Of a stretch of DNA of 64,000 nucleotides, positions 2,611-31,041 are shown piece by piece. The notes below the pieces were generated by a model. That model saw nothing but the letters and a program-made list of their open reading frames with translations, did not search any database and was not told the DNA's origin. The position numbers were made by a program, and so were the translations under genes. The DNA lies in IMG/VR virus record IMGVR_UViG_3300005965_000002, positions 1-64,000 of that record; one strand, written 5' to 3'. Each line of letters opens with the position of its first letter. Position 1 is the stretch's first letter.

Positions 2611-2924
2611 TTATATCTTACCGTGCTTGTTTTCCCATTCTTCCCGGAACCTTCTAGCGTACTTATTGACCCATTCTTCACAAGCTTCTTCATCTAGGTC
2701 TCTTCCTTCTTGTTCACTTCTGATCCATTTATACTTCTCGATTTCTTCTATTTCATCCTTCATAAACTTGAAATATTTGCTGTCAGGATTAATAGGAGAA
2801 GGAGGGAAGCTGTCGTCCTTACAGCATATACCAGTAGATCCCTTTAAACACGGCATCGATACTCCCCTGTATATTGGTGCCTGAGGGGGGACTTGAACCC
2901 CCACACCTTTCGGCACTAGATCCT

Positions 2925-3716
2925 CTTACTACTCCTAGTTTCCCAGGCCCTCTCGGTTGTAGTCTGGACTATATCTTCACCCTCAGTTTTACCTGTAGGG
3001 GCCTGACGTATAGTCTCTGAGGGGTCACTAAGACTTCCCTGCGGATTGCCGATTATTATCCATACAGATTTTTACTAATAATCTGCTAATAAGTTGGCAG
3101 ACTCATAGTACTGTAGGCTTTACGGGTTTCCCGCATATAGTCAGGTTTCACGCTCCCAATTACTTGAAAGGTGCTCAGGATATGAAGAACATTTCAAAAG
3201 AACTTCTTAAAAAATACTATCTACAGCAAAAACTTACACCCTATAAAATAGGAGAACTCTTTGGAGTTAACCACAAAACTGTAAGGAGCTACTTAAAAAA
3301 ATACCAAATACCCATGCGTACTGCCTCAGAATATAATTTTTTAGCCCGTAAGAGTCATACAAGACCCGACAAAAAAAAGTTACAAAGTAAATTATCCATT
3401 GCCGGGCATTCTGCTTTTCTTTGTGAAGGTTGGCATACAGAAAAAACAAATGCTTTTTATTTCTGTAATACAGATCCCGCCCTCATTCTTTTGGTCCTTA
3501 ATACGCTAAAAAGGATTTATCAAGTTAAAAGAATCGCTATACAAATAATAGCTAAAGAAAAAACAGGAACTAAAAAATTATTTGATATCTTTCCAGAAGC
3601 CTCCTTTATTGTTGAAAAAGATAGAAAAACTCCTATAGTTCGCCTTAGGTGTGGGGGTAAAAATCTTGCTAGAGAAGTAATAGAAAATTCTTACAGAATA
3701 GTTACTTCACTTTACT
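2925..3716 (-). ncRNA. group I intron (792 nt) in anticodon of tRNA-Leu(TAG)
   Basis: Inserted after U34, ends in G; core elements TCAGAGACTA and AAGATATAGTCC present. Confidence 0.9.
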
Positions 3717-3718
3717 AA
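3182..3718 (+). CDS. HTH + LAGLIDADG-like homing endonuclease encoded antisense inside the intron
   Basis: N-terminal HTH (LTPYKIGELFGVNHKTVRSYL), then AFLCEG...F.NTDP.LI motif; ATG at 3182 preferred over TTG at 3164. Confidence 0.65.
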   Translation: MKNISKELLKKYYLQQKLTPYKIGELFGVNHKTVRSYLKKYQIPMRTASEYNFLARKSHTRPDKKKLQSKLSIAGHSAFLCEGWHTEKTNAFYFCNTDPALILLVLNTLKRIYQVKRIAIQIIAKEKTGTKKLFDIFPEASFIVEKDRKTPIVRLRCGGKNLAREVIENSYRIVTSLY

Positions 3719-3802
3719 GTCTAGCGTGTCTGCCGTTCCACCACTCAGGCATGTAAACCTCGTTAACAATATACTTATCTGTTTTTACTATTTAAACTAC
3801 AG

Positions 3803-4328: not shown

Positions 4329-4550
4329 TTATTTTTTGGACTTTGGCTTAATCAGTCCTTCTTCCATCTTTTTCTGCATTTCTAATTTTCTTTTGGCCGA
4401 TTCTCTTTGTACACGTTTTACAATACACGGCTTTTCGAATCTTCTTCTTTTCTTCATTTCAGAAAGAATGCCGCCATTATCAATTACTTTGGAAAAGCGC
4501 CTGATAGCTTTTTCAATATTTTCGTTATCTCTTATTCTGATGCCATTCAT
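4329..4550 (-). CDS. rpsU: ribosomal protein bS21
   Basis: ENIEKAIRRF...GILSEMKKRRRFEKP signature. Confidence 0.9.
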   Translation of the reverse strand: MNGIRIRDNENIEKAIRRFSKVIDNGGILSEMKKRRRFEKPCIVKRVQRESAKRKLEMQKKMEEGLIKPKSKK

Positions 4551-4575: not shown

Positions 4576-4797
4576 AGCGGGGGGTGGGATTCGAACCCAC
4601 AGCGATTATCCCTAACCGGATTATTTTTCAGACGCTAGGGTTTCCGTTATTACGGTTCCTCATCATTGTTCGGGCTATAGCTAGCTCTGTTCAGGCCCGA
4701 ACCCAGGTAGAGGCGTGCAACCGGTCTCGCTTAACCCGGTCAGTTTGTTTTCTCCCGAACCTGGATGGGAGGCGTCTACCAATTCCGCCACCCCCGC
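4576..4797 (-). ncRNA. 222-nt tRNA-like RNA with ~140-nt structured insertion
   Basis: Acceptor GCGGGGG/CCCCCGC, Leu-type D arm, canonical T arm; several hairpins between anticodon-like arm and T arm. Confidence 0.75.
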
Positions 4798-4854
4798 TTA
4801 TTACTATAATATACCAATTCTATGGATGTTTTTAAAAAAATTATTAACAAATAA

Positions 4855-5715
4855 TTAGAATTCTACTAATTGGGTTTTCATTTTTCTTACAGTAGCATGG
4901 TGAAAAAGCTTTCTAATAGCTCTTTCTTTTATCTGTCTTACTCTTTCTCTTGTAAGATTAAGCTTATCTCCAATTTCTTGGAGATTATAGCAATGTCGGT
5001 CATATAGGCCAAAATGAAGCCTACATATCTCTTTTTCTCTTTCAGAGAGTACCTGCAACAACTCAGTTACTAATTTTTGAGTTGTCTCCGCGTGAAGAAA
5101 TTCGTTTGCAGTAATCGTATCTTGATCCTCCAGTGTATCTTTAACGGTTGCGTTTCCTTCCCCGATAGGAGAATCTATTGAGATATAAGGAGTATACATA
5201 GAATGAAGCCATTGGTACTCACTATAGCTATCGATATTAAGCTCAGCCATTATCTCCGAGGGTTCCGGTTCTCTCCTAAGCTCCTGCTGTAGCTTAATAA
5301 TGGCTTTCTTATACTGATCAAAAATAGGCACTCTGTTAATAGGTATCCGAGCAATCCTACTTTGGTTTGCTAACGCTTCTAAAACCTGCTGCCTAATCCA
5401 CCAGACAGCATAAGATATAAATTTATACCCTTTTTTATAATCAAACTTTTTAGCTGCCTTAATAAGTCCGATGTTTCCGATGTTAATCAGATCTTCTAAA
5501 GGCAACCCTTGATGCTGGTAAACACTTACTACATTTATCACAAAACGGAGGTTACCAAGAATTAGTTCTTCCTCGGCCTTTTTATCCCCTTTTGCTATAC
5601 GAATTGCCAGGTTTTTCTCTTGTTCATAGCTAAAATTTTTATATTTACTTATATCACAAAAGTAGATATCTAAAAGAGAATTACCGGTATCTGGTTTACT
5701 TTTTGTATTTTTCAT
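4855..5715 (-). CDS. sigma-70 (RpoD/RpoS-like) factor lacking region 1.1
   Basis: NLRFV, GNIGLIKAAKKFD, FISYAVWWIRQ, TRERVRQI; start moved to ATG 5715 because the upstream part of the track ORF is a tRNA. Confidence 0.92.
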   Translation of the reverse strand: MKNTKSKPDTGNSLLDIYFCDISKYKNFSYEQEKNLAIRIAKGDKKAEEELILGNLRFVINVVSVYQHQGLPLEDLINIGNIGLIKAAKKFDYKKGYKFISYAVWWIRQQVLEALANQSRIARIPINRVPIFDQYKKAIIKLQQELRREPEPSEIMAELNIDSYSEYQWLHSMYTPYISIDSPIGEGNATVKDTLEDQDTITANEFLHAETTQKLVTELLQVLSEREKEICRLHFGLYDRHCYNLQEIGDKLNLTRERVRQIKERAIRKLFHHATVRKMKTQLVEF

Positions 5716-5726
5716 AGTATAAAAAA

Positions 5727-5817
5727 TGGCGGAGGGTGAGGGACTCGAACCCCCAACACCCGAAGGTGACCGGTTTTCAAGACCGGAGCGGTCAACCAAA
5801 TTACGCTTTAACCCTCC
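5727..5817 (-). tRNA. tRNA-Ser(TGA)
   Basis: CCGGT-CTTGAAA-ACCGG, long variable arm, CCA. Confidence 0.92.
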
Positions 5818-11731: not shown

Positions 11732-12406
11732 TAAAGAATGATTGTTTTGCTTTCTCTACAAGTTTCTTCCAAACGGTTGTACTCAGTTTTGGGTACTGTC
11801 TGTGTGCGGTACTGATGATATGAGGCGATACCCATTCCAAGAAGAAGGATGCTGAGGAGAGCAGCACTTATGAATAAGCCATCACCTGACGTGGCTGCTA
11901 AAGCTACTGAAAGAATGACAATAAAAAAGAGGAAAGAGATAACTATTACTAAAAAAATAGGTAGCATACTAGTCCTTTTTTGAGGCGTCGCGCTTATAGA
12001 TATCACATTTAGATATACCACATTTGCTGATGCCCTCTAGTGTTCTTTGTTCCAGGTCAGAATAGTCTTCCCACGGAATAATCGGGGTAAATGATTCTTT
12101 GGCTTTCTTCCCCATCTCAGTACGGCTTTGAATATTTTCTATGTTAGGCTTATCCAATGTTATTCCTTTACTTCTCCTGAAAATATGTGATTGTCGCATT
12201 TAACTACATCATCTTGACAGGTATCTTTTAGTACCGGATGATGCCCTCTAAATTCAGGATTGCTCATGCATTTAGGCCATTTATCAGTATGGTCACACAT
12301 AATGCATAAATTAGGTAATGTAGCTAATTCATTCATAAATACTTCCTGAAAAAATGGTACTCGGGACGAGATTCGAACTCGTACGGGGTTACCCCCAATG
12401 GATTTT

Positions 12407-13174
12407 CTTACTACTCTTGCTTTCACAAGCCGCTATAACGTTGTAGTCTGGACTATATCATCTCCTTAGTAAAACCTTAGGAGGGACGTGCATAGTCTCT
12501 GAACCTTCCCCATTTTAAAGGGGCTCGGCTGCTGATTACCCAATCTCTGATAGTTTTTTAACTTTCACACCCGCTGTTTTCAGCCATGTTGTAGTCATCT
12601 GAGCTATAAGGGCTTTCCAGCAATTCTCGTCCTGCTCACCTATTGATTTCTCAATAAGGGCTCTTTGATCCCTTATAAAAAAGTGAAGCCTGCCATGCTG
12701 CATCCTACTAATAATTATCATGTTACTTAAAGAGTTGTCTTTTATATCACCGTTAATATGATGAATAACTTCGTTATAAGAAAGTTTTCTCTTCAAAACT
12801 TGTTCAGCTATTACCCGGTGTATATCTTTAGAACTTCCTTTAAGTTTATTGTAATTACCAGTAGCATTGTTACCTATTTTTGAGACTTTTCTATAGCATT
12901 CTAAACAGTACTTTTGGTCTTTGTGGTTTAGCTTAATTTTTTTAGTGCATAAAACACAAAATCCCCAACCGTATCTATTTTTGTAAGCCGCTCCTCCTTT
13001 TTGAAGATAAAAATATTTACGTCTTTCTAGGTAACAAGGATTACAGTATCGTCTTCCTTTTGTTGGCGGGATCTTTTTACATTTAACACAAAGCCTCTCC
13101 ATAATAACTCCTTTTATTGGAAGGACCAATATTAGGAGATTATGGTGGACACAACGTGTCAAGTGTAAAAAACA
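12407..13174 (-). ncRNA. group I intron (768 nt) in anticodon of tRNA-Leu(TAA)
   Basis: After U34, ends ...AGTAGTAAG; TCAGAGACTA and GATATAGTCC core elements. Confidence 0.9.
12536..13102 (-). CDS. intron-encoded HNH homing endonuclease with zinc fingers
   Basis: HRVIAE..L.R.L...EVIHHING...DN...N motif; CxxC pairs; start at ATG 13102 with RBS GGAG. Confidence 0.85.
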   Translation of the reverse strand: MERLCVKCKKIPPTKGRRYCNPCYLERRKYFYLQKGGAAYKNRYGWGFCVLCTKKIKLNHKDQKYCLECYRKVSKIGNNATGNYNKLKGSSKDIHRVIAEQVLKRKLSYNEVIHHINGDIKDNSLSNMIIISRMQHGRLHFFIRDQRALIEKSIGEQDENCWKALIAQMTTTWLKTAGVKVKKLSEIG

Positions 13175-13268
13175 AAGTCCACAGTGTCTACCATTCCACC
13201 ACCCGAGCATGTCAAAGATCATCTCATATGAATATACTCCTTTGATTATTCTAATTAAAGTAAAAAAG

Positions 13269-14041: not shown

Positions 14042-14124
14042 TGCTGACGGAGAGACTCGAACTCTCATGAGCATAAGCCCACCAGGTCCTGAACCTGGCG
14101 TGTCTACCATTCCACCACATCAGC
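14042..14124 (-). tRNA. tRNA-Leu(CAG)
   Basis: CCAGG-TTCAGGA-CCTGG; no CCA. Confidence 0.92.
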
Positions 14125-16276: not shown

Positions 16277-17830
16277 TTACATTTTGTCCCTCCTTTTTTT
16301 CCATCTTTTCATAAGTTCTTTCTCCATATATTCTTTGGAAGGTTTCTTACCTTCTTTTTCAACGTATTCGTCCTCGATATCATTAACTATTCCAATAGCT
16401 ACTCCAACCTCAGGTCCAGCTTTTATATCGAGCAGTTCTTTTATCTCATTGCCGTTTAGGGGCGGCTTCTTCGATACAGGTACTTTTCTAGCTTGTTCTA
16501 TTTTTTCCCTTAGCATAGGAATTGAGTTACTAGGAGGTATTTTACCTAATTGATCTGCTTCAGCTAAATCGAGTAGAGAATCTACCAATTCGTCCCCAAT
16601 GCTTCTAATGAAACGACGTAATGCCTTTTCTGTAAGCTTTCCTTCTTCTAGATCTTTCGCCAAGGCATGGGGACGCATATGGTTTCTAACCATCTTTTTA
16701 ACCTTGTCGATATCTTTGACCTTAAAGTTCAGCCTCCTCATTATGCCCTCGGCTATTTCAGAGGCGGCAGCTTCATGGCCGTGGTGCTTTATTTCACCCT
16801 CCATCATAGATCTTGTTGCGGGCTTTCCAATGTCGTGCAGCAGAGCTGCCATCTGATTATTAAGACCAGGCTTTGCATTATCAAGCACCATAAGAGTGTG
16901 CGTCAATACATCACCTTCCTGGTGATGCCTCTCTGATTGCGTTTCCTCTTGTAGTGCTTTTACCTCGGGCAGTATGTGCTCAAGAAGACCGGTATCTCTC
17001 ATAAATTTAATCATAGAGGATAGTTTACCGTAATCAGCTATTTTTTCCATTTCCTCTTGGATACGCTCACTCGAAATGATATTAATTCGGTCTGCATTTC
17101 TTTTTACGGAGTCTATCATGTACTGTGGGATCTTCCAGTTGTATTTAGCTTTGAATCTCACAAGTCTGAGCATTCTCAATGGATCGCTCGTAAACATTTC
17201 ATCCAGGTTTACTTTCGGATGACCAGTAAGGTTTCCTTCTTCTATATCCTTCCGGCTACGCCCGGTAAGATCTTTTATCTCACCGGTAGATAAATCTTTT
17301 AAGAGCATGTTGACCGTAAAGTCACGCCTCATTATATCTTCCTCTACGGTGCCCGGCTCGGTTACTCTTTGCCTGGATTTAGGATCGGGAAAGGATTCCT
17401 TCTGGGAGTCAGCAAATTCTATTACTGCGCCCTGAGTCTGGTAGAGGTCACCTTTATAGTTAATGTTTTCCTTAAAGGTAATCTGCCATATCGGGTAAGA
17501 TTTTCCCATTTGATAAGGAGTCGATACAGATCCTGGATTCTCTTTGTTTAACGTAGTATTGATATATTTGGTCAGCTCTTCTGCGCCACCCCCCTTAGGG
17601 CTATCTACCATTATATCCAGGTCTTTGGCTTTTATTGAAGGATCTTTTTTTATTTTACTCAGATACTCATCGCGGACGTAACCGCCGACAGCATAAGCCT
17701 TACCTTTCCAAGGAGTGGTTGGTAGCCAATCTTTAAAAAGTCTTTCTACTTCTTTTTCTGCATCCGCAGCTACCTTTTTTAAAAGGTGGTTAGCTGCTTC
17801 TCTCAGTTTCGCTGCTGTCTTGAGTTCCAT
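16277..17830 (-). CDS. cca: CCA-adding tRNA nucleotidyltransferase with HD domain
   Basis: AVGGYVRD, DLD, RRDFTVN, DPLRMLR, SERI, LLHDIGKP motifs. Confidence 0.92.
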   Translation of the reverse strand: MELKTAAKLREAANHLLKKVAADAEKEVERLFKDWLPTTPWKGKAYAVGGYVRDEYLSKIKKDPSIKAKDLDIMVDSPKGGGAEELTKYINTTLNKENPGSVSTPYQMGKSYPIWQITFKENINYKGDLYQTQGAVIEFADSQKESFPDPKSRQRVTEPGTVEEDIMRRDFTVNMLLKDLSTGEIKDLTGRSRKDIEEGNLTGHPKVNLDEMFTSDPLRMLRLVRFKAKYNWKIPQYMIDSVKRNADRINIISSERIQEEMEKIADYGKLSSMIKFMRDTGLLEHILPEVKALQEETQSERHHQEGDVLTHTLMVLDNAKPGLNNQMAALLHDIGKPATRSMMEGEIKHHGHEAAASEIAEGIMRRLNFKVKDIDKVKKMVRNHMRPHALAKDLEEGKLTEKALRRFIRSIGDELVDSLLDLAEADQLGKIPPSNSIPMLREKIEQARKVPVSKKPPLNGNEIKELLDIKAGPEVGVAIGIVNDIEDEYVEKEGKKPSKEYMEKELMKRWKKRRDKM

Positions 17831-30807: not shown

Positions 30808-30968
30808 TTTAATACTCTACTTTATCCGTCTCAAAGGATATACCAGTTTTTTTGACGATAACAGTTACCTGTATATGCTTTAAAGGGATTGGTAAAGGCG
30901 GTAAATAAATGTCTTTTCTATACGGATCATATCTTTTAATCGAAGGAACGAATGGTAACAGTTTTAAG

Positions 30969-31041
30969 CGCCCCCGAAAGGATTCGAACCTTTGACTGAC
31001 TGGTTTTAGGGACCACTCCTCTACCACTGAGGTACGGGGGC
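30969..31041 (-). tRNA. putative amber-suppressor tRNA (anticodon CTA), Trp-like anticodon arm
   Basis: TGGT-CCCTAAA-ACCA; perfect acceptor GCCCCCG/CGGGGGC; G73; C33. Confidence 0.7.

Follow-up and report, generated by a model that had tools for sequence, protein, structure and literature searches.

What kind of gene is the 222-nt element between the sigma-70 and bS21 genes of a huge phage from a hypersaline lake or microbial mat? The question arose within a window of 64,000 nucleotides of phage DNA, the whole stretch that was analysed, and the gene lies at 4576–4797 on its minus strand. The original prediction was that it specifies a tRNA-like RNA whose anticodon-like loop is locked by a pseudoknot, and that it might represent a new class of tRNA mimic. 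We find that every sequence feature listed in that prediction is present, that homologues occur in other phages, and that comparison of these supports the interpretation, although some details require correction. Known tRNA-like RNAs include tmRNA, Y RNA modules, the plant-virus TLS and mascRNA. What is new here is a complete and apparently authentic tRNA top half combined with a covariation-supported pseudoknot between the anticodon-like loop and a large conserved domain in the position of the variable arm, in an RNA for which searches of Rfam 15 found no family.

Sequence features and genomic setting

In the description that follows, RNA position p corresponds to window coordinate 4798 − p on the minus strand. 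The acceptor stem is a perfect 7-bp helix, GCGGGGG/CCCCCGC, formed by p1-7 (4791–4797) and p215-221, and is followed by a discriminator U at p222 (3′ strand and discriminator together, 4576–4583). No CCA is encoded, but about half of the phage's ordinary tRNA genes also lack an encoded CCA, and the phage encodes a protein of the CCA-adding/poly(A)-polymerase family (PF01743). The D arm, GCGGAAUUGGUAGACGC (4772–4788), is of the Leu type (class II), with a 3-bp stem, A14 and G18G19, and the T arm, GUGGG-UUCGAAU-CCCAC (4584–4600), is canonical. Between them lies an anticodon-like hairpin (4752–4771), in which a 5-bp stem (p27-31/42-46) closes the 10-nt loop AUCCAGGUUC, which lacks U33. Where a variable arm should be, there is instead an insert of about 151 nt (p47-197), somewhat more than the approximately 140 nt originally proposed.

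The insert comprises several helices. Hairpin H1 (4719–4741), GACCGG-GUUAAGCGAGA-CCGGUU, contains the ACCGG/CCGGU pairing of p58-62 with p74-78. Hairpin H2 (4668–4702) pairs GUUCGGGC with GCCCGAAC (p96-103/123-130) and is enclosed by a further helix, P5, absent from the original prediction, in which CCUC (p85-88; 4710–4713) pairs with GAGG (p137-140; 4658–4661). Hairpin H3 (4644–4655), CCGU-AAUA-ACGG (stem p143-146/151-154), is flanked by the conserved GGAA...GGAAACC, and hairpin H4 (4610–4640) pairs CCCUAGC with GUUAGGG (p158-164/182-188). The loop sequence AUCCAGGU (p32-39) is complementary to ACCUGGGU (p90-97), as originally noted, but only p34/35-39 with p90-94/95 is supported as the pseudoknot, here termed PK1; p96-97 belong to H2. 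The 5′ strand of PK1 is CCAGGU (p34-39; 4759–4764), and the 3′ strand is ACCUGG (p90-95; 4703–4708), a codon-like stretch.

Upstream lies the phage sigma-70 family gene (4855–5715, minus strand), with Pfam regions 2, 3 and 4 and a 286-aa product that is present in the protein database. Downstream is the gene for a phage ribosomal protein, bS21 (4329–4550, minus strand; PF01165, E = 1.8e-15), whose AGGAG Shine–Dalgarno sequence starts about 13 nt after the 3′ end of the RNA. A promoter-like motif, TTTAAA-N17-(TGG)TATATT (4808–4836, minus strand), precedes the RNA, its −10 element ending 10 nt before p1. Such sites are no more frequent than in shuffled sequence, but the TTnAAAA and GTATATT blocks are invariant in two related phages although the spacer around them has diverged. 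The element is present in single copy in the 258,580-bp phage record, and its GC content is 55%, against 38% for the window.

In a single sequence, most of this would not exceed chance. The MFE z-score is only −1.8, and a 6-bp complement to the loop somewhere in 150 nt is, by our estimate, expected by chance roughly 40% of the time. It is comparison with homologues that makes it more than chance.

Homologues and covariation

Homologues were found in two ways. Synteny between the sigma-70 and bS21 genes yielded copies in two related phages (L002 and L003), whose sigma proteins are only 59–60% identical to the window's. A search for the invariant H1 21-mer yielded L007, L009 and L010, a 257-nt copy only 59% identical to the window's, which lies 3 nt after an L7/L12 gene in an unrelated phage. 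The element is at least as conserved as the flanking genes (74–82% against 64–75%). The family was found only in hypersaline-lake and microbial-mat samples. It is absent from GenBank phages by a blastn search with the window's copy, and exact-pattern scans of IMG/VR gave only hits that proved on inspection to be chance matches, as did a scan of species genomes, with one chance hit in a Poribacteria MAG. A tblastn search of phages with the sigma protein gave only hits below 40% identity, and look-ups of L7/L12 and bS21 homologues gave only the same phages or cellular loci.

Across the four sequences (window, L002, L003 and L010), 93.6% of the proposed pairs form. Sixteen pairs show changes on both sides, against 5.5±1.9 in shuffles (0 of 500 reach this number) and 0–2 when the partners are slid. 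These are spread over the acceptor stem (3), D arm (1), anticodon-like stem (2), PK1 (3), P5 (1), H2 (4), H4 (1) and T arm (1). Only four distinct sequences in two clades exist, however, so most of the covariation rests on the single divergent L010 copy, and in the MAFFT alignment used, H2 and H4 of L010 and L002 are partly misaligned. A strain variant seen in metagenome contigs provides further evidence. It has 12 differences, comprising one compensatory pair (C99-G127 to U-A, in H2), two pair-preserving changes (G163A and C164U, in H4), and others confined to loops or linkers, and it breaks no pair.

Element by element, all seven acceptor pairs form in all four copies, and three have compensatory changes. 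The ‘Gly-like’ acceptor set claimed originally (G1-C72, G3-C70 and U73) is not conserved; L002 and L003 have A3-U70, and L010 has A1-U72, A3-U70 and C73. Because the acceptor identity bases vary, no charging enzyme can be predicted. The tertiary signature bases of tRNA (U8, A14, G18G19, R15:Y48 and the T loop) are invariant or covarying in the four copies. In the alignment, judged by eye, A15 accompanies U197 in the window clade and G15 accompanies C in L010, matching the 15:48 Levitt pair. The T-stem has one compensatory and one one-sided change. The anticodon-like stem changes from CUCCC/GGGAG to CGUCC/GGACG in L010, and its loop is 9–10 nt in all copies. In PK1, three of the six pairs change on both sides in L010, in the same alignment columns, and 87.5% of pair cells form. 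The geometry is that of an H-type pseudoknot, with a stem 1 of 5 bp, a loop 1 of 2 nt in all copies, and a stem 2 of 5–6 bp.

Within the insert, H1 is the most conserved block; p55 and p57-78, including the whole 11-nt loop, are invariant in all four copies. P5 was predicted by RNAalifold and has one compensatory and one one-sided change, with 100% of pair cells forming. A hairpin forms at the position of H2 in the window, the variant, L002 and L003; in L010, the segment folded was cut short and did not fold, and its H2 was paired by eye. The stem of H3 is conserved while its loop varies (GAAA in the strain variant), and L002 has a tandem duplication of this module. The three inner pairs of H4 differ in the window, L002 and L003 but pair in each, and in L010 the hairpin is extended to about 79 nt. 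Just 5′ of the T stem, AAUCGCU (4601–4607), of which AAUCGC is invariant in all four copies, is a candidate partner of AGCGA in the H1 loop; this second pseudoknot (PK2) is possible, but there is no variation by which to judge it. Two alternative pairings from the MFE fold were rejected. One, p38-44 with p124-130, would acquire a C41·A127 mismatch in the strain variant, whose C99U/G127A pair compensates within local H2. The other, p28-34 with p134-141, would be broken by the variant's G134A and is replaced by P5. A C/D-box-like UGAUGA...CUGA motif in the window is not conserved in L003 or L010.

These observations bear on the possibility that the element is a dead tRNA-Leu gene, disrupted by an insertion such as a miniature mobile element. 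The motif GGUU(C/A)GGG occurs three times (p36-43, 95-102 and 181-188) and could be mistaken for duplications made by an insertion. But the element persists through divergence that left the adjacent sigma protein only 59–60% identical, it occurs in an unrelated phage, its insert helices show compensatory changes, and nothing similar turned up in the phage or viral collections searched. We regard a functionless pseudogene as very improbable.

Relation to tRNAs, introns and tmRNA

Neither ARAGORN, in its default and tmRNA modes, nor Rfam 15 recognizes the element. Rfam, at gathering and at permissive thresholds, gives nothing consistent on four homologues. Could it nevertheless be a decoding class II tRNA (Leu, anticodon CAG) with an extraordinarily large variable arm, the pseudoknot being a transient or regulatory alternative fold? 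The 5′ half closely resembles tRNA-Leu, the loop contains UCCAGGU where E. coli tRNA-Leu(CAG) appears to have UUCAGGU, one intron-mode run of ARAGORN called Leu(CAG), and metagenome contigs of ordinary tRNA-Leu(GAG) align to its D and T arms. Yet no copy has U33, the base at that position being C, A, A and C, and the loops (10, 9, 9 and 10 nt) differ by an indel between close relatives. The discriminator is U, U, U and C rather than the A73 that LeuRS needs, which is present in all five ordinary Leu tRNAs of this phage. The Rfam tRNA model (RF00005) scores 15.3 bits against a gathering score of 29, on a spurious sub-alignment of the 3′ part only. Further, the variable arm, usually 13–20 nt, is replaced by a domain of about 150–190 nt built from several helices. 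The phage already has five Leu isoacceptors, CAA, GAG and CAG (the last at 14042–14124), plus intron-containing UAG and UAA, and a sixth is not needed. We consider this reading very unlikely.

A tRNA gene with an intron is a further alternative, and had to be excluded explicitly. ARAGORN's intron mode reads tRNA-Trp(CCA) with a 147-nt intron, and the same phage does carry two tRNA-Leu genes interrupted by group I introns. But the program calls Leu or Trp, Pro, Gly, Arg, or nothing on the five sequence versions, with different splice sites in every copy and none in L010, so that the reading is an artefact; tRNA finders either miss such genes or mis-annotate them as intron-containing tRNAs. The anticodon-like stem closes locally and covaries, and the supposed 3′ anticodon-stem strand, AGGGA, is the covarying 3′ strand of H4, with no equivalent in L010. 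Splicing at the equivalent sites would give a 6-nt loop in L002 and L003. The two real introns, located 1–8 kb away on the same strand, are about 0.8 kb, lie between U34 and A35, match RF00028 at 79 and 67 bits, and leave normal exons with A73 and CCA; the element has none of these properties and no RF00028 hit even at E ≤ 10. At 147 nt, the supposed intron also seems shorter than self-splicing group I introns. Inspection by hand revealed no bulge–helix–bulge motif, at most 2 bp of the required 4-bp central helix being possible at the ARAGORN splice sites, and the host signals (sigma-70 and bS21) are bacterial. We consider an intron-containing tRNA very unlikely.

Also very unlikely is a tmRNA-like RNA for trans-translation. 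Like tmRNA, the element has a tRNA-like domain joined to a pseudoknotted body; it sits in a translation-related neighbourhood, and some huge phages are reported to encode tmRNAs. But the 3:70 pair is G3-C70 or A3-U70, never G3·U70. The element is much smaller than tmRNA, and has a full D arm and an anticodon-like stem, which tmRNA lacks. No tag reading frame is conserved; an 18-codon frame exists in the window, but the same frame stops after three codons in L003, and H2 evolves by compensatory changes. ARAGORN's tmRNA mode is negative on all copies, Rfam's tmRNA model matches only 18 nt of the T loop of L010, and no SmpB gene was found in the 258-kb record, which is 55% complete.

Possible function

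Our favoured explanation, held with moderate confidence in the absence of expression evidence, is that this is a gene for a stable, non-decoding, tRNA-shaped RNA that descends from a class II (Leu-type) tRNA. We infer that the top half lets the RNA be cut out by RNase P, receive CCA and be held by proteins that recognize tRNA by shape. The bottom half probably cannot read codons, because the loop has 9–10 nt, has no U33, and has its anticodon-like triplet already paired to a codon-like triplet in cis. The RNA would therefore act as a tRNA mimic, or handle, carrying a functional RNA domain. Because both phage clades place it beside a phage-encoded ribosomal-protein gene, we infer that it is probably part of the phage's translation-takeover genes, although this link rests on only two independent contexts. 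It may act on the ribosome, or on a tRNA-directed enzyme or defence nuclease; no binding partner was found, and the 55%-complete genome revealed no Ro60, SmpB or class Ia aminoacyl-tRNA synthetase. If expressed, it offers a tractable model for what huge phages do with their translation genes, a possible new ribosome-directed or tRNA-enzyme-directed effector or anti-defence decoy, and a natural example of the tRNA-scaffold design used in RNA engineering.

A cis-acting role is the strongest of the alternatives, but still unlikely. The tRNA-like fold would serve as an RNase P/RNase Z ‘punctuation mark’ that releases or stabilizes the neighbouring ribosomal-protein mRNA, and the excised RNA would have no job of its own. 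In keeping with this, no intrinsic terminator separates the element from bS21, and in L010 it follows the L7/L12 stop codon with no room for a promoter, so it must be co-transcribed and cut out. All 37 tRNAs of the phage are interspersed with genes on the same strand. But an ordinary tRNA or a bare acceptor/T minihelix would be enough for punctuation, which does not explain a conserved 150-nt domain, an invariant H1 loop, or a covarying pseudoknot with the anticodon-like loop. And the flanking gene differs between the clades in identity and in side, bS21 being downstream and L7/L12 upstream.

A more speculative possibility, which we consider improbable but of great interest if true, is that the RNA is a ready-paired ‘tRNA plus codon’ mimic. 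The pseudoknot would present a preformed anticodon–codon helix (CAG:CUG in the window clade, GAG:CUC in L010) on a full tRNA body, allowing it to enter a ribosomal tRNA site without mRNA, in the way that tmRNA–SmpB or pseudoknot I of the dicistrovirus IGR IRES do. Together with phage bS21 or L7/L12, it would reprogram, park or rescue host ribosomes during infection, a new way for a bacterial virus to manipulate the ribosome with an RNA. The IRES pseudoknot likewise appears to be an anticodon-stem-loop-like hairpin whose loop pairs in cis with a codon-like triplet, but it lies in an mRNA of a eukaryotic virus and seems to have no acceptor, T or D domain; here, a whole tRNA body is attached, and no ORF follows the codon-like strand.

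Two other RNAs invite comparison. The YrlA (Y RNA) module of bacteria and phages is a non-coding RNA that mimics tRNA, carries tRNA-type modifications, and is a substrate of tRNA-recognizing enzymes, including for RNase P cleavage and CCA addition (PMC4201824). In YrlA, the ends of the RNA probably form the Ro60-binding stem, the tRNA-like part being internal, whereas here the ends form the acceptor stem; there is no Rfam Y RNA hit, and no Ro60/TROVE gene in the incomplete phage record. RNA C and RNA D of phage T4 (species 1 and 2) are small stable RNAs of unknown function encoded in a phage tRNA cluster (PMC3014915). Without a direct alignment, we noticed no sequence resemblance to the element beyond the T arm. 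RNA C is 139 nt long, with no recognizable D arm and no loop-to-insert pseudoknot, but it has paired ends and a canonical T arm (CCGGG-UUCGAAU-CCCGG).

The element and its genomic surroundings

The element lies on the minus strand at 4576-4797, and RNA position p corresponds to window coordinate 4798 - p. Read 5' to 3', it begins with an acceptor-stem strand, GCGGGGG (p1-7), that pairs with CCCCCGC (p215-221); this is followed by U, and no CCA is encoded. After U8 and G9 comes a D arm, GCGGAAUUGGUAGACGC, of the kind seen in class II Leu tRNAs, then a hairpin, CUCCC-AUCCAGGUUC-GGGAG (p27-46), an insert of about 151 nt (p47-197), and a textbook T arm, GUGGG-UUCGAAU-CCCAC. The original prediction, of a tRNA-like RNA with four named hairpins and a loop complementary to the insert, is accurate: all four hairpins are present, as is the loop-to-insert complementarity. 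The upstream TTTAAA-N17-TATATT motif is at 4836-4808, with a TGG just before the -10 element. An 83-aa ORF on the opposite strand (4584-4835, plus strand) covers the RNA gene, but length differences among the homologues that are not multiples of three (222, 220, 234 and 257 nt), together with compensatory substitutions, argue that it is not a gene.

The 258,580-bp IMG/VR phage record, of which the window is the first 64 kb, is estimated by CheckV to be 55% complete, and comes from a hypersaline-lake or microbial-mat metagenome. The element sits between a sigma-70 family gene and a ribosomal protein bS21 gene, with an HPr gene a little further on. All 37 tRNA genes that ARAGORN finds in the record lie in this window on the minus strand, interspersed with genes. 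About half of the ordinary tRNA genes lack an encoded CCA, as this element does, and, in keeping with this, the phage encodes a protein of the CCA-adding/poly(A)-polymerase family (PF01743, 51.6 bits; 17228-17698, minus strand, within a 518-aa open frame). Two of the tRNA genes merit comment. A 91-nt gene at 5727-5817 (minus strand) is called tRNA-Ala(cgc) by ARAGORN, with the anticodon at position 28, but it has the loop CUUGAAA and a long variable arm and so looks like tRNA-Ser(UGA); Rfam scores it at only 31 bits. Another, at 30968-31041 (minus strand), has the anticodon CUA (labeled ‘Pyl’ by ARAGORN), that is, it is an amber-suppressor-type tRNA, and hints that the phage may read TAG as a sense codon in some genes.

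Two further tRNA genes, Leu(UAG) and Leu(UAA), are interrupted by group I introns of about 0.8 kb between U34 and A35, and ‘tRNA with an intron’ was therefore a serious alternative for the element. The tRNA-Leu(UAG) gene (2877-3750, minus strand) is split by an intron of about 792 nt: the 5' exon is 3750-3717, the Rfam RF00028 hit is 2944-3239, and the 3' exon starts at 2924, with A73 and CCA encoded. This intron carries an ORF on the opposite strand (3164-3718, plus strand), called as a 178-aa gene in sister contigs. L002, a contig of a related phage, has the same tRNA without the intron (L002:4088-4171), so the intron looks mobile. In the tRNA-Leu(UAA) gene (12350-13208, minus strand), the 5' exon starts at 13208, the intron includes the RF00028 hit at 12433-12677, and the 3' exon has A73 and CCA. 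This intron occupies the same U34/A35 position as the classic cyanobacterial and plastid tRNA-Leu intron.

The element itself matches no known family in these searches. Default ARAGORN and its tmRNA mode skip it, and Rfam 15 finds nothing at gathering thresholds. A permissive local scan gives only noise—15 bits for the tRNA model on a spurious sub-alignment, and nothing for group I introns, tmRNA or ribozymes—and the same holds for the homologues. The intron mode of ARAGORN does call tRNA-Trp(CCA) with a 147-nt intron. On the other copies, however, it calls Pro(CGG), Gly(CCC), Arg(CCG), Leu(CAG) or nothing, each with different splice sites. A real intron-containing tRNA would keep the same exons and anticodon, and this reading is thus an artefact.

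Homologues and their distribution

A blastn search against GenBank phages and exact-pattern scans of IMG/VR found nothing, but homologues were recovered by two other routes. First, the sigma protein has only two phage relatives, at 59-60% identity, in a collection of 5.8 billion proteins. Their contigs, L002 and L003, show the same order, sigma - about 300 nt - bS21 - HPr, and the gap holds a clear homologue of the element. The L002 copy has a tandem duplication of about 27 nt (L002:3020-3075, plus strand) covering the module GAGGAACCGU-loop-ACGGAAACCCU, which comprises the 3' strand of helix P5 plus hairpin H3; this part of the insert therefore tolerates a repeat. Second, the 21-mer ACCGGGTTAAGCGAGACCGGT (hairpin H1), invariant in those three copies, was scanned against JGI metagenome contigs, and found the window's own record plus three contigs of an unrelated phage, L007, L009 and L010.

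In that unrelated phage, a 257-nt version begins 3 nt after the stop codon of a phage L7/L12 gene, among ORFans. Its L7/L12 is closest to Firmicutes proteins (55-62% identity), whereas the sigma factor of the window phage is closest to primary sigma factors of the Fibrobacterota-Bacteroidota group (about 46-49%). We infer from this that the two phages probably infect different phyla. Further degenerate-pattern scans returned only chance matches, and look-ups of bS21 and L7/L12 added no new lineage. The family is real, but rare in the collections searched.

Covariation, the loop-to-insert pseudoknot and strain variation

On a MAFFT alignment of the four distinct copies, RNAalifold recovers the acceptor, D, anticodon-like and T stems, and hairpins H1, H2, H3 and H4. 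It also adds a helix, P5 (p85-88 with p137-140), that encloses H2. We then scored a structure that includes, in addition, two pseudoknots: PK1 (p34-39 with p90-95), and a speculative PK2 (H1-loop AGCGA with UCGCU at p193-197). Of the pair cells, 93.6% form standard pairs, against 87.3% in shuffles. Sixteen pairs have changes on both sides, against 5.5±1.9 in shuffles (0 of 500 reach it) and 0-2 when the partners are slid by 1-3 columns. These are distributed as follows: acceptor stem 3, D arm 1, anticodon-like stem 2 (CUCCC/GGGAG becomes CGUCC/GGACG), PK1 3, P5 1, H2 4, H4 1 and T arm 1. In PK1, CCAGG facing CCUGG in the window becomes ACGAG facing CUCGU in L010, in the same alignment columns, and the core, p35-38 with p91-94, pairs in all four copies. 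These counts rest on four sequences in two clades, aligned by MAFFT rather than by a covariance model, and H2 and H4 are partly misaligned in L002 and L010. Folding each segment alone gives a hairpin at both places in the window, the strain variant described below, L002 and L003, and at H4 in L010; the L010 H2 segment was cut short and did not fold, and was paired by eye. The three inner pairs of H4 are A-U, G·U, C-G in the window; C-G, U-A, C-G in L002; and G-C, G-C, G-C in L003. H1 and the AAUCGC block are invariant, and so neither support nor refute PK2.

Contigs from other mat and lake runs include a strain whose element differs at 12 places, and this evidence is independent of the homologue alignment. 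G22U falls in the D loop. C99U occurs together with G127A, a compensatory pair in H2. G163A and C164U change G·U to A-U and C-G to U·G in H4, and A147G and U149A turn the H3 loop AAUA into GAAA. The remainder are in loops and linkers. No change breaks a helix, and p38-95 (apart from loops) is untouched.

The top half of the molecule looks like a working tRNA core. U8, A14, G18G19 and the T loop are invariant, and position 15 and the base before the T stem are A and U in the window clade and G and C in L010, as expected for the Levitt pair. The bottom half does not. The loop has 9-10 nt, with an indel even between close relatives, and no copy has U33. Five to six loop bases are paired in PK1, with the geometry of a classical H-type pseudoknot: loop 1 is 2 nt in every copy, and loop 3, which carries H1, is partly A-rich. 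The discriminator is U, U, U and C, whereas all five ordinary Leu tRNAs of this phage have the A73 that LeuRS requires. The first three acceptor pairs are not conserved, and so no synthetase can be predicted. The triplet paired inside PK1 is a Leu anticodon facing a Leu codon in both clades (CAG:CUG and GAG:CUC), although one column out of register. By itself, this has roughly a 1-in-4 chance expectation, and we treat it as a hint about the origin of the RNA and not as proof.

Expression signals, related RNAs and possible functions

The promoter-like motif is not statistically special in this AT-rich region. Its two blocks are nonetheless conserved in L002 and L003, while the spacer and flanks diverge. 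In those two copies, the -10 element ends only 4-6 nt before p1, and transcription, although unproven, may start at or next to the mature 5' end. No terminator follows, so bS21 is probably co-transcribed. In L010, the gene has no room for its own promoter and must be cut out of the L7/L12 transcript. The main rival to a trans-acting RNA is that the fold is merely a processing signal for the neighboring mRNA, but this does not explain the conserved insert or the pseudoknot. The element is at least as conserved as its protein-coding neighbors (74-82% against 64-75% DNA identity), and is a GC island of 55% against 38%.

The element is, then, a conserved, structured, tRNA-shaped RNA gene whose anticodon-like loop is sequestered. 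We infer that it is processed and stabilized like a tRNA, and works as a mimic that carries a 150-nt functional domain. In this it would resemble other tRNA mimics: tmRNA, the tRNA-like module of bacterial and phage Y RNAs (PMC4201824), and perhaps the still-unexplained T4 RNA C, which also has a T arm and paired ends (PMC3014915). It fails the defining tests of each of these. What appears to be new is the architecture—a complete class II tRNA body, a multi-helix domain in the variable-arm position, and a pseudoknot from that domain to the anticodon-like loop—which we did not find described in two full-text literature searches aimed at it.

In two unrelated phages the element lies directly beside a phage-encoded ribosomal-protein gene, bS21 in one and L7/L12 in the other. 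Such genes are rare in phage genomes, and for this reason we infer that the element belongs to the translation-takeover module. How it might act is conjectural. It could bind a ribosomal tRNA site as a preformed tRNA-codon mimic; it could titrate an enzyme that recognizes the tRNA elbow and acceptor stem; or it could act as a decoy for tRNA-directed defence nucleases. Phage tRNAs are known to evade anticodon nucleases (PMC10264068). Relatives of the window phage carry PNKP and RNA ligase genes, which in T4 repair nuclease-cut tRNA. In L002 (7327-12732, plus strand), two PNKP-like genes, an RNA ligase and an HNH nuclease occur in a row; this looks like a T4-style tRNA repair set, and suggests that these phages face tRNA-cleaving host defences.
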